A stretch of 64,000 nt of DNA from Phallusia mammillata (taxonomy: Eukaryota). Of the stretch, positions 293-8,476 are shown piece by piece. The notes beneath the pieces are model-generated. The model did not search any database and was not told where the DNA came from. It saw only the letters and a list, made by a program, of their open reading frames with translations. Made by a program: the position numbers and the translations under genes. Numbering within the stretch: the stretch's first letter is position 1; every line of letters begins with the position of its first letter. The DNA is taken from contig OZ281497.1 of the NCBI GenBank assembly GCA_965637545.1, positions 1,054,001 to 1,118,000 on the forward strand, written 5' to 3'.

Positions 293-2665
293 TCAAACTG
301 CAACAACAGCCCCCTCGTATCTTGGTTCATCCAGATCCATAAAAAGCGACCAAGAATCTGAAACTGGATCAAAAACTTCCACTGATCCAGTTTGACCACT
401 GCAACATATTCAAGTGAAATAAGATATGAAGACAAACAGCAGGATCAACTGAAAAGGCTTAAACAAAACTGTAGATTAAGATTCCAACTCACGATGAGTT
501 TTGTCCACCAATGGCATAAATCTTTCCACCAACAACACAAGCACCATGGAAAGCCCTTCCAACATTCAGAGAACCGGCATATGCCCATTTGTTGGCAGTC
601 AGGTCATAATACTCAACAGAGGACATTGGGTGTTGGCCATTCCAACCACCTATAAGTTAAAATATTTTACCAGTGTTTACTGCTAGCTGTTATTCACTAA
701 AGCAATCATCAAATGACGTTGTGTCCTATATTAATTTGGCTTCTGGTTAAGCTTATATTTGTTTAATACTTTTGGGGGTTAAGAACCTAAAACTAATTTT
801 TAGGCCAAATTTGATATGGCCATGGCATATGAAAAGATTGCCTTGCATAAAATGACCACTGACTGTAAAAAACAATGCTTCAATATATGACAGTGGTTGC
901 CAACCTGGGGTTAAACCCCCTAGCAGTCAATTCGATGGTTCTAAGGAGTCCATGAAGACAAATAATTATAGGCATATTTCAACTAAGGATTTGAGGTGAG
1001 TTTATTTTGCTAGGTGAAACAAATTGTAGCAGCACAATTGCGCTAAAATATTCACCAAGCCATTTCTTGAAAACTTTGAAAAGTTCTTGAAATATGCTAT
1101 AAAATAGTTTGTATTCATGGACCCTCTTAAGGTAAACTTAGCTTAGCCCAGGACTGTATTACCCTAATATATTACTGAGAGGGGTCGGAAGCTATCAAAC
1201 TGTTGTGAACCACTGGTCCATGAGACACGACTTACCGATGGAATAAATCTTTCCATCATAAAGCACACTGGCCAGACCCCATCTTCCCTTCTTCAGCCGA
1301 GTCATGTTTTGCCATTGTCCGATTCTGAAGTCGTAAAATTCACAAGCATGGTTTTGTTGTGAGGAACCACCGATGCAGTACAAAGTATCTGCAACAAGAT
1401 CAAGCTAATTGATTGACTCAATACTTGGTGTAAAGTGATCTTTTTTGTTTCAAGTGTAGTAACTAAACAGGCTTTAGTTTTATCAGCTAGAGCTGGTTCA
1501 TGTGTTTATGTGAGTGTTTAAGGTGGTACTTTTGCTTAACAAAGAGACTGGATGTCCTTTAACATGATTAAATAATAATCACCAATTATGAAAACTATAG
1601 AAAAACACCATCTTACTTTGGTGTGCAATCATACGGAATCCGCTTCTAGTATGCAGCATGTTTGAATGCTTGATCCATTGAATAGAGCCAATATCGAATT
1701 CATCAAATGAGAACAAGGGTTCATCATTCAGTCTTCCCCCAGCAACATAAATGCTCTCTGCAAAATATATATATAACTGGTCTGCCTGTTAACATCGTTT
1801 GATGCAGAAAAACTCGCACCTCCCAAAACAGCTGAAGCAAGACTGTCCCTTGGTTCCAGCAGATCAGGCAATATTGACCATTCTGTCGGGTCATTCATGT
1901 CCAGAGTCTCACAACTTCTATGTGAGTTGTTTCCGCAGGCATCCTCCGCACCACCGAACACAAAAATCTTTGTTCCAACTTTGACGGCTGTTGTTTCACA
2001 TCGGCCCACATTAAGTGACTTTGAAGAAACAAAATATAAAAGGTTAAAGCACAGCCAGATATTTCACAACCAACTTATATTTAAGTTAAAACAAAATGTA
2101 TTTTTTAGGTAAGCATAGATCAGTTCCTTCCTAACTGGGGTCTACAGTCTCTTGTGTCATATTATATTACAGTTTTATTTGATGTTAAAGGTTTAGATAG
2201 CTGTATCAAAAGATACAAATTTGCACTGAACATGTATTGAGCATTATTCCCATGTTTTTAACAAATCACAAGTTACAAAAGAAACAGATTGTTTCAGCAT
2301 GATTAAATTGTTAACAGCTTTATTTGGCTAAAACACATATTCAGCTACTTAAATATTTTTAAATTGGTCAAAAATGAAAAGGAATGGTTAAAAACATATC
2401 ATTAAAAAGTATGGCAACCAGTAAAGTAAAGAAACAGAATAAAAAGCACATAACACTTTTTTATCAATTTACATCTTTTTATGTGTAAACAAACTTTCTC
2501 AAAAGTATAGATTGCCTGAAGTTACATTATTGCCACTATCTTGTACAAAACAAAAATCAATCTAACTTACAGGCAAATTGTGATGTTGTTTTGTGTTAAT
2601 GTCAAACTTCACACAGTCGGTTTCAGCCCCGTCACCACCGACAACAAGAAAGGCATTCGTCGGAT
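293..2665 (-). other. Five Kelch repeats (beta-propeller) of the gene above
   Basis: Repeats FLVVGG, IFVFGG..W..LP..R, LYCIGG..YD..W..R, IYSIGGWNG..VEYYD..KW..R, IYAIGG..VEVFDP..W..PR, spread over five exons with in-frame junctions. Confidence 0.93.
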
Positions 2666-5600
2666 CTGGAAACAACAGTGAAGCGATAACACACCAAGAT
2701 GCTTGGAAACCACAAAACCCACAAAGTTAAGCTTAAATGGGAGTCAATGTGTTTTTTCAGTCGACACAAACCAGTTTATAACGAACAAGCGTTTCGTCCA
2801 CCAGGTGCATATTTAACAAATTTGTCGTTCAACTGGTGTAATGCTAAACACAATACTAGTTGTTGTTTTTTCATTCATATTATTTATTGCTCATAACATT
2901 CATTGCTCTGACAAAAATCTACCATTTTGGTGTGCGAAATGTCAGCAAAAAACGGGTTTTGAAAAAACACTGAGTATTTTGTTTAGCATTACACCAGTTG
3001 AATGACAAATTTGTTAAACAAACTAGCTTGTTAGTATCTTACTGGGTTTGCTTGGTGAGAAATGAACTGCATCACAATTGGATTTCATCTTGTACTTGTA
3101 AACTTTTTTATAAACTCACACAAAAGCTCATAACTAAAAAAACGTTGTTAAGACTGATAACAAATTTGCAGTAAACACCAAATTCTTTGCACAAACAAGC
3201 AATGTGGCATCACTAGCAGTGCAGAAACTAAGTTCTACTGGATGTACATTGTAAAGTTTGTCATTGGAAAAGTCTAGACAGGACGTTATGTACAGAGCAA
3301 ACATGTCTTGTGTTAACGCTTGTGTAAATATGCTTATTCCATGTCAAACACAGTACAAAATTTTACTGCTTTGGCACACAAGTAATAAAATTGCTTGGCT
3401 TTGAAATGGGTTTAAATTTAATTAATCATTTCTGTTTATTATACAATATAAGTAGGATCTTACCCAGCAATATTTGTGAACTTGTTTCATCATTTGAAAT
3501 TCCAACCCTTCGAGATGTGCTCATACCTGTGTAAAGAAACAGAATATTAATTAACAAACAAATAGGCAAACGTCATCATCTGAACCTGTAAGAGCAAAAA
3601 AGTTGGCCTATCTTTAACCATTGTGGCAGTGCATGGCTTGTCCCGGTGTATGTTACAATATACAATAAAGACACAATTTATCTCGAGTGAACAAAGCTTA
3701 CCTTCACCGAAGAGGAGTTTAGGGTTTGTTTCATCGCTCGAATTTGCGAAAAATGGTTGTCGACCTGAATTTGCAATTTCAGCACAGATTTCTGAGTAAC
3801 TTTTGCTTTTGCCTTGTTGTAGTTTTGGTGGTGTGTTATCATCTGAATGGCCATGTATTGCAGCTGCACCCAAAACAATAAATTTATGCATAAATGAATT
3901 AAGGTGTCCATATAATGACATAAAGAGCAGCGGTTCCCAAACTTTTCTAAAAATTTTGCCTGGTGGACCCTTTGTAATTATTCTGATAATTCGCGACCAT
4001 ATAAAAATCAAAGAATGCTATTGGAAAAATGCACAAAACACACCAACAAAACAAAATAGCAAATTCGCTAACTAAAGACTAATATAAAACAGACATTACA
4101 CCCAAGAAAGCTTTATCAACAAATTAAAATCATTGCCGTACATTGTGGACCCTCCAAAAATGACTAATTCTCATGGCAGACCCTCGTACGGACCTCAGTT
4201 TGGGAACTGCTGATACAGAGAGATATACCTATTGGAACTTGATTTGAGTTGAGTTTATTTCGCTGGGTGAAACCAATCGTAGCAGCTGCAGCACTACTGC
4301 GACCTGGTAATTTCGGGTGAGTTTCATCCTCGGAATTTCCAACAAATACTGGTCGGTTTGAATTTGCAATTTCAGCAGAGATTTCTCTGTTACTTTTGCT
4401 TTTGCCACTAGGTTGTGCTTTTGGAATTGTTTCATCTTCTGAGTTTTTTGCACGGTGTTGGTTTTCTAAGAGCATAGAACATACTAACAAGTTAAAAAGC
4501 ACAATTTATCTCAAGTAAACAATGCTTACCTTCACTGAAAAGAAGTTTAGGGTTTGTTTCATCGCTCGAATATACAATTTCATCATCAATTTTTAAGTAA
4601 TGTTTGGTCACCAAATGAGCTGCACCCAAAATCAAGAAATATATGCATAAATGAATGAAGGCATCCATATAATGACATATAGAGAGATATTTACCTATTT
4701 CAGCACTTTGAAAAGTGATTTCTGCAGAACTTTTGCTTTCGCCACTGGGTTGTTGTTTTGGTATTGTTTCATCTTCTGAAGTTTCAACCATTGCATGATG
4801 TTGGGTTTCTAAGACCATAAAACATACTAACAAGTTGAAAAGGTGTCCACAGAATGTCACACATACACATAAATATACCTGCTGGCAGTTTTGGGTGGGT
4901 TTCATCACTTGAATCAAAAGTGGGACCTGGTGAAGCATCTGCAAATACATTTCACATAAGCAGAGACATGTCATATAAAAGCACTTGCTTCGGTAGCATT
5001 ACATTTCAAGAGAGAAGAGATTTCCGTTGCAATGGATTTCAAAACAACCATAAATGAGACTTTTTGTATGGCATAATGTGTAACAGTAATTCTGATGAGT
5101 AGGAACAGCAAAAAAATGTTACAGATGCCATATGCCATAAGAAGTAATGACTCAAATGTGTGACATGTTACATCTGGGCAAACTATTTTGGTGGGGCAAC
5201 CTATAATTGTTAAATTATGTGTTATTCTTACTTGGTGCAATGCTTGGTTGGCTAGAGGGGCTTGAATCATCAGATGACTTAACGTTGACATCTACAAACA
5301 TAAGGACATGGCTGAATGGTGGAAGTATTTACACTTAAATGCAAAAAATACATGCCTTAGTGCAGGTGCAAAACCTGCAGCCACATGCAGTCGCGGTGAC
5401 GAATGTAAGCAGCCATGAATTGATTAAAACTCTTACATATATATTTACATTTGAAAAACCAGTCTAAATGGACTTTACTGGGATGAAAATGTTTATCAAA
5501 GCATTGGACTTTTTGTAAGCCTATTGTTTGTAAATATTTGAATAAAGAGGCAAACAAATGATGTAACAGTATAAAAAAGCTGCAAAATGTGCGACTCAAT

Positions 5601-8476
5601 AGATGGGATATTGAAAGATATATCCTATTTCTTTACATTAGTAATGTATAACTAATAAACATGAAGACAATTAGCTTTACCAGGGAAAGAATTTTTTTTA
5701 AACAAATAGTAGACTGTCAGCAGGATTTTTAGTTCTTTTGTTAGTGCTTTACGGTTTAGTCTTGTGCACGATTCTTTAGCGCTGTTTGTTTTTAGATACT
5801 GATGATGCCTATTACTTGATGACTTCCGACTTTTAAAGTTTTCAATCGGTTAAGACAAGTAGTTTTACCTAACAAGCGCTTGCGGTAACTTTTAGTTGAC
5901 TGTGATTCAGTAGAATTGCCACCAATTGTATCCACTTCCTCTCTTTGATATAGCAGCGGTGGTTCAATGTCTGCAATAATAACAGATGTCACACCACACG
6001 TTTTCACCAAGTACACAATTACCAACTTTGGTTTTGCGCTGCCTGTTGTGGGTTTTCTTCCCGTTCCGCCTCAAACCTGGGCAGGATTTCACTTCCAGTA
6101 GCTAAACATGAAAAACACAGTTTGGTTTTGTCAATGCAAATTTCTGCCTGGTTAAAATAGAATGAAATTTGCCACATAAACACATGCCAATATATCCTAT
6201 TTGTAAATTAAACATAAAAATTCCCTTGAGAATATACTCTTTAGTATTTGCTGTGCTATACATGTCCCATGTGTGTCTTACAACAGTTCAAAAATCTGCA
6301 ATAAAAAAAAACAGCAAATACTTCTATTTTTACTAAGACACTATAAATTAAAAAGCCACATTGAAATGAGGCCTATTAAAAACTAATAGTACAAATTTTT
6401 CTTTCAATCAAAACACATAAGTCTTACTTTTTTCTCTTGCTGACCCATTAAAGTGTATTAGTGGCATTAAGGAGATGTTTTAAATTTATTGTGTAGCAGG
6501 AAAACTCACTGTAAAACATTCCAGTTTCAGAAGAAAATGTGTGAAGTGGAACAGTAGGTTTGTGTTCAGCTGCAGGATGCTTGATTTCCATTTCCTTGAC
6601 AGCATCAGTGACTTGTTGTGAAATAACTGCTGGGTCTTGTTTGGCAAGATGTTGTTGGAATTCATCTCGAACTTCCAGCATGTCAGGTCGGTTAGTGGGG
6701 TCCTGGTCCCAACATCTGGTCATCATCACCTCCATCACTTCAACTATCGCTCTGTCACTCTCACTACACATCAGTTCCTGAATTGCTTCACAATTTGGAC
6801 GAACTCCTTGCTCCAACATATGTCGAAAGTCTTGGTAATCTTGAACTGATGGAAAAGGTATTTCTCGAGTTAAAGTCATGCAATATATCAAGCCACAGCT
6901 GTAGGTGTCTTGTTCCTTCTTCGGTCTGGCGTCGTGCAAAAGCTTTTCAGGAGCTGCATAAATCCAAGTCAGCGCTGGTCTTTCTCTGTTTCTCGGCAAC
7001 TGTATCGTTGTGGACCCAGTGTAGCTTGCGGTTCTCGCGCTACCAAAATCAGCTATCTTGCAGTGCAGATCACATGTTAAGAGGATGTTTTCTGGTTTCA
7101 AATCTCCGTGAATCATTCGCTTTTTCAGTGAACAATTGTGAATAAATGAAACTCCACTTGCAATTTCGGAATTTATTCGAAGCCGAAGAGCTACTCCGAG
7201 GTCCACAAACTCATCAAGTAACAAGGTACACAAATTTCCACCTTCGTAGTATTGCATCACAATGCCCATTGAGCCAGGCCATTTGGTGTATCCAAAAACA
7301 GTCGCTATGTTGTCATGGCGAGATTGAAGCAACATATTGTATTCATGCTTAATTCTGAAAAAAGCAAACACTCAGAATTTAAACAAAGTCACATTTATTT
7401 TCAGAAATGTTTGTTTCTTGCTAATTTTAAAACTATTAGATGAATGACTTTTGTTAGAATTTGATAGACAATAATTTTACTCACAATAAATTGCTAACAT
7501 AGCGCCTTTGTCGTGAAAACACAAAGCCTAAATAAATTAAAACCATTTAAGATTAGTTGGTAATAGGATATTAGGTTCACTAAACCTATACAATGTAGCT
7601 GCAGCATGTTTCAGCCACAATTGTGCCCTTCACTGTTTTGCGCTCCATACTGTTTGCACAGCTAAACAAAACATTGCACAGCTATTGCTGACTTGGTGAT
7701 GGTTTTAGTTCTTTTGTGTTATAATGTTTTTTGTTTCACCGAACAAAATAAACTCAACTTAAGTACGACAGAAACTTTAGCCAAAATACATTAATTATAT
7801 GTTGAGTATTACTTGCACAAACTTTGTTCTTACTTTTTTTCAATGAGCAACTTTTCTCTTTCCCCGCCCATGACTTTGAAACACTTGATGGCCACATATT
7901 GATTGCGTCGATGAAATCCAAGCAGAACGCAACCGAATCCTCCCTGGCCTAACTTGCATAAACCAACATCACAGAGGATTTGCGATGGATAGAACTCATG
8001 GATCTACATAGATATTTATAGTCATAGCCAGGATTGAAAAAAATAAACAAAAAAGGTGAAAAATAGAATAAGAAAGTAAATTGTTCTCGTAGTTTTAGTA
8101 ACAATCTCACCTATTGCTTAAATTTACATTTGTTAAAGTTTTATATGTTGAGCATCTATTTTTTGGTCGCTCGTTTGAGATTAACTGGTGCTTTTTGTCC
8201 ATTATTGTTTTATTATTATACAATTTTTTTCTAAATCATGTTCAGGTTACTTAGCTCTCTGGTGGCAGACATATATATGGACTTTAAAATGTTAAAATAC
8301 AATTGCCAGAACAGCTCTATAAATTTGATATCATGCTTAGCAGTAACAGCTTGTATATATGTGGACATGTACATGCTTCATTTATGTTTTGAGTCGAAAA
8401 ATTTAAATTATTAATAGAAATAAAGTGCATATAGTTGATAACATAGTTAACTTACGAGCTGCTCTTTGGTTGACAT
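293..8476 (-). CDS. Multi-exon gene: RIPK-like Ser/Thr kinase + acidic repeat linker + C-terminal Kelch repeats (~900 aa), no BTB/BACK, death or CARD domain seen
   Basis: Manual splice model keeps one open frame with GT-AG introns: 8476-8456 (MSTKEQL), 8003-7834 (LGQGGFG..VAIK), 7354-6510 (kinase core), linker exons between ~6101 and 3464 all joined by phase-1 introns, then Kelch exons 2665-2571, 2018-1820, 1388-1236, 649-493, 398-293 (stop TGA 293-295). The kinase-Kelch link is inferred from phase compatibility; one linker donor (GTTGGT near 6025) is weak. Confidence 0.75.
2812..3018. mobile_element. Foldback/MITE-like element with ~60-bp inverted arms and TTAA ends
   Basis: ttaacaaatttgtcgttcaactggtgtaatgctaaac (from 2813) is the near-perfect reverse complement of gtttagcattacaccagttgaatgacaaatttgttaa (to 3017). 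Confidence 0.7.
3464..5291 (-). repeat. Tandemly duplicated exon+intron units encoding ~8-9 copies of the S[SE]DETxPK motif
   Basis: SSDETHPKLP, SEDETIPKQQPSG, SSDETNPKLLF, SEDETIPKAQPSG, SEDETHPKLP, SDDNTPPKLQ, SSDETNPKLLF, SNDETSSQ. Flanking intron sequence is also duplicated (e.g. catactaacaagtt at ~4482 and ~4824; gctgcacccaaaa at ~3864 and ~4619). Confidence 0.9.
3928..4212. mobile_element. hAT-type MITE
   Basis: TIRs cagcggttcccaaac / gtttgggaactgctg; 8-bp TSD ataaagag / atacagag; the paralogous empty site (gac-atatagag-agatat) is visible at ~4673-4690. Confidence 0.85.
6510..8476 (-). other. Protein kinase domain (TKL group, RIPK-like, non-RD) of the gene above
   Basis: Motifs LGQGGFGCV, YVAIKCF, IHGDLKPENILL, KIADFGSA, WIYAAPE, QDTYSCG, CWDQDPTNRP; 307-aa ORF 6448-7371 plus two upstream exons. 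Confidence 0.95.

Follow-up and report, generated by a model that had tools for sequence, protein, structure and literature searches.

We analyzed a 64,000-nucleotide (nt) window of the genome of the ascidian Phallusia mammillata, corresponding to C4:1,054,001-1,118,000 of a 240-Mb (megabase) assembly, in which a gene on the minus strand between positions 293 and 8476 encodes a RIPK-like protein kinase, a repetitive linker and a Kelch domain. Eighteen exons bounded by GT-AG introns join into one 2850-nt frame of 949 amino acid residues without an internal stop, which opens with an ATG at 8476 and closes, in the spliced frame, with a stop codon at 293-295 (Table 1). A first-pass annotation made from the letters of this window had placed kinase, linker and Kelch repeats on one strand in a single frame between 293 and 8476, and our gene model agrees with both the organization and the limits, the start and stop codons falling exactly on the two ends. 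The G+C content of the window, 35-38% over its first 10 kilobases (kb), and the division of the coding sequence into separate pieces are as expected for an animal genome.

Pfam was run on the open pieces and on the exons separately. The Pkinase family was recognized in the open minus-strand piece 6451-7371 (E = 4e-32), with the part containing the Gly-loop and VAIK in 7833-8003 of the same strand, and Kelch motifs were found in minus-strand pieces within 296-2063, the piece 492-656 matching Kelch_1 (E = 3e-17). An exhaustive protein search with the kinase exon returned the P. mammillata protein CAB3227504.1 (hereafter P0001), which is 887 residues long, 62% identical and of the same architecture as the window protein, with Pkinase and Kelch by Pfam. 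Exon 2 is 50% identical to residues 10-65 of P0001.

Table 1. Exons of the kinase-Kelch gene and other features of the locus (window coordinates)
Feature	Position	Strand	Content and support
Exon 1	8456..8476	-	ATG, 7 codons (MSTKEQL), then GTAAGT donor; placed from the sequence; colinear with the P0001 N-terminus
Exon 2	7834..8003	-	Kinase N-lobe: Gly-loop GQGGFGCV, VAIK (Lys47); Pfam Pkinase, E = 9e-4; AG/GT sites present, splice sites predicted
Exon 3	6510..7354	-	Remaining kinase domain (HGDLKPEN, DFG, APE) and conserved 45-residue tail; Pfam Pkinase, E = 4e-32
Linker exons, first five	6101-6027, 5970-5869, 5291-5232, 4938-4879, 4808-4695	-	Joints in spliced contigs
Linker exons, last four	4619-4530, 4465-4229, 3863-3702, 3526-3464	-	Joints in spliced contigs
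Exon 13	2571..2665	-	Start of Kelch domain (first GG doublet, blade 1); joints 3464/2665 and 2571/2018; aligns to P0001 residues 593-631
Exon 14	1820..2018	-	Kelch blades 1-2; Pfam Kelch_2/Kelch_6/Kelch_1; joints in spliced contigs
Exon 15	1617..1757	-	Kelch blade 3; Pfam Kelch_3; joint 1820/1757 and contig loose end at 1617
Exon 16	1236..1388	-	Kelch blade 4; Pfam Kelch_1; 30-nt contig loose end at 1617 matches the sequence from 1388; donor predicted
Exon 17	493..649	-	Kelch blade 5; Pfam Kelch_1, E = 3e-17; splice sites predicted
Exon 18	293..398	-	Kelch blade 6 and stop (...YEGAVVAV*); Pfam Kelch_1; P0001 ends alike (...GGSTVVAV)
Possible alternative exon	3043..3102	-	Spliced to 2665; in-frame ATG at 3088 (MKSNCDAVHFSPSKP); GTAAGA donor
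MITE-like interspersed repeat	2783..3019	.	About 236 bp, inverted ends; in the intron preceding exon 13, outside the coding unit

Transcript evidence

Sixteen public runs of the organism were listed for the window, and four of them were assembled onto positions 1550-7500. Two runs of unstated kind, probably DNA, contain 75-85% of the sampled words of the window, and four likely RNA runs contain 21-25%, approximately the exon share. Three runs from a single study (X1-X3) yielded intron-skipping contigs in which every skip runs from GT to AG on the minus strand, with joints at 6510/6101, 6027/5970, 5869/5291, 5232/4938, 4879/4808, 4695/4619, 4530/4465, 4229/3863, 3699/3523 (placed at 3702/3526 in the gene model), 3464/2665, 2571/2018 and 1820/1757. 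All junctions from 6510 to 1617, that is from the kinase exon to the third Kelch exon, are bridged in up to three runs, including 6510/6101 and 3464/2665, which had been named for checking when the gene was first noticed. Spliced contigs cover exon 3 from 6510 to 7184 and show the donor at 6510; its start at 7354 is predicted. The chain from kinase to Kelch consists of four overlapping pieces, namely 6671-4695 (X2), the 4695/4619 joint (X2), 4621-4229 (X3), and 4353-1617 and beyond (X2). Contig pieces depart from the window at 0-3 letters each, and no paralogue described below exceeds 65% protein identity, which makes a cross-assembly of different copies unlikely. The gene is expressed and correctly spliced.

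Kinase domain

The kinase domain occupies approximately residues 20-300 and contains the motifs GQGGFGCV (26-33), VAIK (44-47), HGDLKPEN (146-153), DFG (166-168) and APE (198-200). All catalytic motifs being present, nothing marks it as a pseudokinase, and the domain looks catalytically competent; the catalytic loop reads HGD and not HRD, so that the kinase is of the non-RD type, a trait common to RIPK and IRAK relatives. Its best matches among the solved structures of the PDB are RIPK1, RIPK2 and RIPK4 (E = 7e-22 to 4e-21), with RIPK3, IRAK4 and TAK1 ranking lower (approximately 1e-15). Together with the position of the kinase beside fish RIPK1 in the tree described below, these matches bear out the RIPK-like assignment made in the first-pass annotation.

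The protein resembles RIPK1, RIPK2 and RIPK4 in its non-RD loop and in the succession of an N-terminal kinase, a flexible middle region and a C-terminal protein-interaction module, but identity is low and the module is a Kelch propeller instead of a death domain, CARD, RHIM or ankyrin repeats. Downstream of the kinase, Pfam detected only Kelch families in the window exons and in P0001, without death domain, CARD, RHIM or ankyrin, and a search of the window protein for the RHIM tetrad [IV]Q[IVLC]G found no occurrence. A survey of the RIPK family reports no RIPK1 homologue in tunicates under its own definition (PMC12119088).

Kelch propeller and linker

The Kelch part comprises residues 667-949 (283 residues) and contains six GG doublets, which indicate six blades, one more than the five repeats initially counted. 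The fold was modeled on P0001, whose Kelch domain is colinear with and 41% identical to that of the window protein and serves here as a stand-in for it. The predicted structure is a six-bladed propeller (predicted local distance difference test score, pLDDT, 94.4; predicted template modeling score, pTM, 0.91) that matches the propellers of KLHL3, KLHL12, KLHL2 and KEAP1 with template modeling (TM) scores of 0.92-0.94 and root-mean-square deviations of 1.3-1.7 Å, several of these having been solved with substrate peptides. By sequence, the natural structures nearest to the Kelch part are those of KLHL20 and KLHL3. The window protein thus shares a six-bladed Kelch_1-type propeller with the KLHL/KEAP1 adaptors (KLHL20, KLHL3, KLHL12, KEAP1), from which it differs in that BTB and BACK are absent and a kinase stands in their place. 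The absence of BTB and BACK, noted at the outset, was confirmed by tblastn using the BTB-BACK part of the Phallusia BTB-BACK-Kelch protein P0291 as a query, which gave no match in the gene or in 18 paralogue loci; a single match elsewhere in the window is at chance level (E = 0.57). Without BTB and BACK, the protein has no route to Cul3 and no BTB dimerization.

Between the two domains lies a linker of 321 residues (346-666), rich in S, E and P, which is encoded by nine exons that are all of phase 1-1 and contains six copies of the motif S[SE]DETxPK. Its exon-plus-intron units are duplicated at 86-90% identity, indicating that the linker grew by internal tandem duplication. The linker is probably disordered, and its long open pieces (3550-5000) match no Pfam family. 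P0001 has a different repeat at the same position. We considered S[SE]DETxPK, which is similar to the acidic degrons of KEAP1 and KLHL3, as a conserved Kelch-binding or pseudo-substrate motif, and rejected it as a feature of the family because tblastn gave no such linker in the 18 paralogues and the repeat of P0001 differs. In the linker exons the contigs also depart from the assembly by in-frame changes, with 6 nt omitted at 4284 and 9 letters replacing 12 at 5279-5291, the start of exon 6. These differences are probably allelic variation in linker length.

A chromosomal family of kinase-Kelch genes

At least 136 relatives of the kinase exon were scored in the genome, out of 313 candidates. 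Eighteen further copies at 53-65% identity (17 at 57-65% and one at 53%) lie on C4 between 0.5 and 3.9 Mb, and more than 100 additional RIPK-like kinase exons, approximately 41-47% identical, are found mainly on C2 and C1. We examined 10 kb for each of the 18 close C4 copies. In 16 of them the kinase exon is followed, after a gap of approximately 0.4-5 kb, by Kelch exons that share its strand and keep the same order. The window gene displays the pattern of the C4 copies, with a large single kinase exon, a variable linker and same-strand Kelch exons, and its kinase falls in their clade (support 100/99). The gene is not an isolated oddity but a member of a kinase-Kelch family of approximately 19 genes on a single chromosome. 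The catalytic motifs are retained in most of the copies and are non-RD throughout; clear in-frame stops occur in two (the kinase of L018 and the N-lobe of L029). The kinase exon of P0001 is 96% identical to C4:2,337,006-2,337,857, a paralogue with Kelch exons, so that for a sister copy the fusion has the support of a public gene model made independently.

The same region of C4 also harbors Cul3-adaptor-type genes. BTB-BACK exons of the P0291 type gave 166 matches, in more than 50 distinct loci, and Kelch exons gave 159; their amplification is almost confined to C4 (0.8-4.85 Mb), where they are interleaved with the kinase-Kelch copies. The BTB-BACK-Kelch array extends over C4:0.82-4.85 Mb and C7:5.27-5.29 Mb, and some of its members adjoin kinase-Kelch copies, for example at 0.82, 0.90 and 0.96 Mb. 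Among the more distant kinases, public relatives of the C2/C1 type carry SH3 (Phallusia), TPR or TSP1 (Clavelina), or no known tail. Dense arrays of these kinase exons were observed at C2:0.69-4.04 Mb and C1:32.7-36.1 Mb, where several scores are identical, as expected from very recent segmental duplicates.

Origin of the fusion

In the kinase tree, all tunicate sequences form one clade that is sister to fish RIPK1 (94/77). A pair of kinase-Kelch proteins from Ciona and Clavelina branches first among the tunicates, and the window family (100/99) is nested, across a 99/98 branch, among kinases with SH3, TPR, TSP1 or no known tail. The Kelch tree groups the window protein and P0001 with Phallusia BTB-Kelch proteins (98/97) and the Ciona/Clavelina pair with a Ciona BTB protein. 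The nearest Kelch relative outside the family is P0291, with 47% identity to P0001 and 36% identity to the window protein; for the kinase-Kelch proteins from Ciona and Clavelina the value is only 27-30%. A single clade of all kinase-linked propellers was rejected (approximately unbiased, AU, test, p = 0.011), the group for this test having been named after the pairwise identities were seen. Both the kinase and the Kelch part of the window gene group outside the orthogroup of Ciona LOC144746229, to which it does not belong.

The older ascidian kinase-Kelch gene is also present in P. mammillata, on the minus strand at C8:12,927,389-12,930,804, with 48-58% identity to Ciona intestinalis XP_078489399.1, a kinase exon at 12,930,346-12,930,804 and Kelch exons at 12,927,389-12,928,074; its kinase is split by an intron. 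This conserved ascidian gene and the window gene agree in domain order, in having a RIPK-like kinase and a Kelch part of six repeats, and in lacking BTB, but the conserved gene has almost no linker, an intron-split kinase and only 27-35% identity to the window protein. The simplest reading of these sequence comparisons is that a RIPK-like kinase and a KLHL-type propeller were fused twice, separately, in ascidians, the second time inside the Phallusia lineage and beside the BTB-Kelch array. This second fusion would have joined a member of a very large RIPK-like expansion to a propeller of the locally amplified BTB-BACK-Kelch family.

Kinase-Kelch proteins in public databases and literature

The first-pass annotation regarded the gene as the best candidate in the window for an undescribed system, and knew of no characterized animal kinase-Kelch protein. 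The latter statement holds, as our search of the literature for a kinase-Kelch protein found no paper describing one. The former is not supported as it stands, since the architecture is present in public protein sets under wrong or empty names. P0001 is named "calcium/calmodulin-dependent protein kinase II-like", which is misleading because its kinase is in fact RIPK-like. The proteins of C. intestinalis (XP_078489399.1, 647 residues) and Clavelina lepadiformis (XP_076804735.1, 656 residues), which were among the matches to the kinase, are labeled uncharacterized, one Clavelina isoform being called "RIPK1-like". Clusters of predicted proteins with Pkinase and Kelch_1 in one chain are also present in the ESM Atlas for sponges (three clusters of 50-73 members each) and ciliates; having been found by language-model features only, this likeness is a lead only. 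The architecture is real and unstudied, yet neither unique nor absent from databases.

More distant comparisons can be made with two other groups. Kelch motifs are drawn in holozoan tyrosine-kinase architectures of filasterean proteins, but those are receptor tyrosine kinases. The plant BSU1/BSL and Plasmodium PPKL proteins hold a Kelch propeller and a phospho-signaling enzyme in one chain (PMC3447748, PMC3434153). Unlike the window protein, they have Kelch at the N-terminus and carry a PP1-like phosphatase, and they are unrelated to it by descent.

Selection on the kinase and Kelch domains

The ratio of nonsynonymous to synonymous substitution rates (dN/dS) of the kinase is 0.21-0.32 in every paralogue pair. 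That of the Kelch part is higher, at 0.20-0.60 in older pairs and approximately 1-1.9 in the three youngest. In these youngest pairs (L017/L023, L018/L027, L026/L028), Kelch dS is 0.06-0.10 versus 0.18-0.36 for the kinase, with similar dN; the low Kelch dS may reflect gene conversion, mosaic duplication or small counts. Among paralogues, loops of the propeller are more variable than strands (p = 3e-4, on partial alignments).

These values bear on the possibility that the gene is a functionless by-product of segmental duplication, a decaying or neutral chimera in a cluster of fast turnover. The location in a region of tandem duplication, the in-frame stops of L018 and L029, a Kelch dN/dS near or above 1 in the youngest pairs and a linker free to vary are all compatible with such a history. 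We nevertheless consider it very unlikely, given that a frame of 949 codons is intact over 18 exons with all catalytic motifs present, that the kinase evolves at a dN/dS of 0.21-0.32, that three runs show the gene to be expressed and correctly spliced, and that a second, independent fusion of both domain types has been kept in three ascidian genera.

Proposed function

We propose, with a probability of roughly 0.6, that the locus is one expressed gene of 18 exons encoding a cytosolic kinase-linker-propeller protein of 949 residues in which the propeller recruits a partner to the kinase. By analogy with KLHL3, KLHL12 and KEAP1, the top face of the propeller would bind a short motif in the partner, and the flexible linker would let the kinase reach the bound partner, whose phosphorylation would follow. 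Alternatively, ligand-driven clustering could switch on the kinase in the manner of RIPKs, which are activated by induced proximity. In either case, a recognition domain that normally feeds Cul3-dependent ubiquitination would feed phosphorylation instead. A possible immune or surveillance role is suggested by the number of copies, a kinase that is RIPK-like and non-RD, a propeller that evolves faster, and the parallel amplified array of Cul3 adaptors.

Several observations weigh against this proposal. Exons 1-2 and 16-18 rest on sequence, splice signals and colinearity with the paralogue P0001. No single read or contig over 1550-7500 was found to run from kinase to Kelch, probably because the linker repeat breaks contig assembly. 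The RNA label of the runs is a guess, although the GT-AG joints argue for RNA. Contig depth is approximately twofold higher over the Kelch half; it is unreliable and cannot rank parts of the gene, and we set it aside as a measure of isoform ratios. The joint 2665/3043 was seen in one run only, with 30 nt on its short side, and the exon at 3043-3102 could begin a Kelch-only message or be a 60-nt cassette exon; in that run both paths into exon 13 have similar depth, with the same unreliability. The linker repeat was not found by tblastn in the 18 paralogue loci, which indicates that it carries no conserved function. Finally, on partial alignments, variability among paralogues is not significantly higher on the ligand-binding face of the propeller than on the opposite face (p = 0.32).

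The lack of a contig spanning the whole gene, the alternative exon with its in-frame ATG and the higher depth over the Kelch half would fit two adjacent genes, a kinase and a Kelch gene, with messages linked by no more than sporadic read-through or misassembled contigs. This explanation appears extremely improbable. All junctions of the kinase-to-Kelch chain are bridged, and the frame stays open through nine phase-1 linker exons. The order of kinase then Kelch recurs in 16 of the 18 paralogues, in one case across a gap of only approximately 370 bp, and public models from Phallusia, Ciona and Clavelina hold both domains in one protein.

Two other roles for the propeller were weighed against the recruitment of a partner. 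It could be a decoy that competes with its BTB-BACK-Kelch paralogues for ligands and shields these from Cul3, or it could fold back to regulate the kinase. The propeller is indeed closest to the local BTB-Kelch genes, and a long flexible linker would permit an intramolecular contact. We regard these roles as unlikely, because a pure decoy needs no kinase kept by purifying selection with intact catalytic residues and because the paralogue linkers share no conserved Kelch-binding motif. Several KLHL propellers (Kelch, KLHL2/Mayven, IPP) bind actin, and KLHL2 is among the structural matches, which raises the possibility that the propeller serves as an anchor for the kinase on the actin cytoskeleton or on some other fixed structure and that the protein is a localized housekeeping enzyme instead of a sensor. 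This seems quite improbable, as one anchoring role leaves unexplained approximately 19 diverging copies in which the propeller evolves faster than the kinase, and the closest relatives are proteins of the Cul3-adaptor type.

If the propeller recruits partners as we propose, it may be one arm of a broader arrangement, an intracellular surveillance with two outputs in which KLHL-type propellers from a single, rapidly diversifying set are linked through BTB-BACK to Cul3 in more than 50 genes and to a RIPK-like kinase in approximately 19. A pathogen protein or a modified self protein would then be sent to degradation or would trigger kinase signaling, and two ascidian fusions of the same domain pair would mean that the pairing was selected and not accidental. 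This extension is doubtful, and we put it forward tentatively.

In vertebrates, RIP kinases and Kelch adaptors each have a central place in cell death, inflammation and stress signaling, but to our knowledge the two have been known only in separate chains. An invertebrate closely related to vertebrates appears to have joined them in one protein on two occasions, and one version has multiplied approximately 19-fold beside a BTB-Kelch array. The recurrence of the fusion and its co-amplification with BTB-Kelch genes add to the interest of what would be a natural experiment in the rewiring of recognition domains from ubiquitination to phosphorylation. The family is also a tractable candidate for a part in ascidian innate immunity, where receptors and signaling kinases are poorly known, and its proposed mechanism is directly testable in Phallusia embryos, which are easy to inject and image. 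The analysis further corrects the public annotation of CAB3227504.1.

Other features of the locus

The genome contains 810 candidate copies of the MITE-like repeat at 2783-3019, which matches in either orientation; the repeat causes a spike in depth and many loose contig ends.

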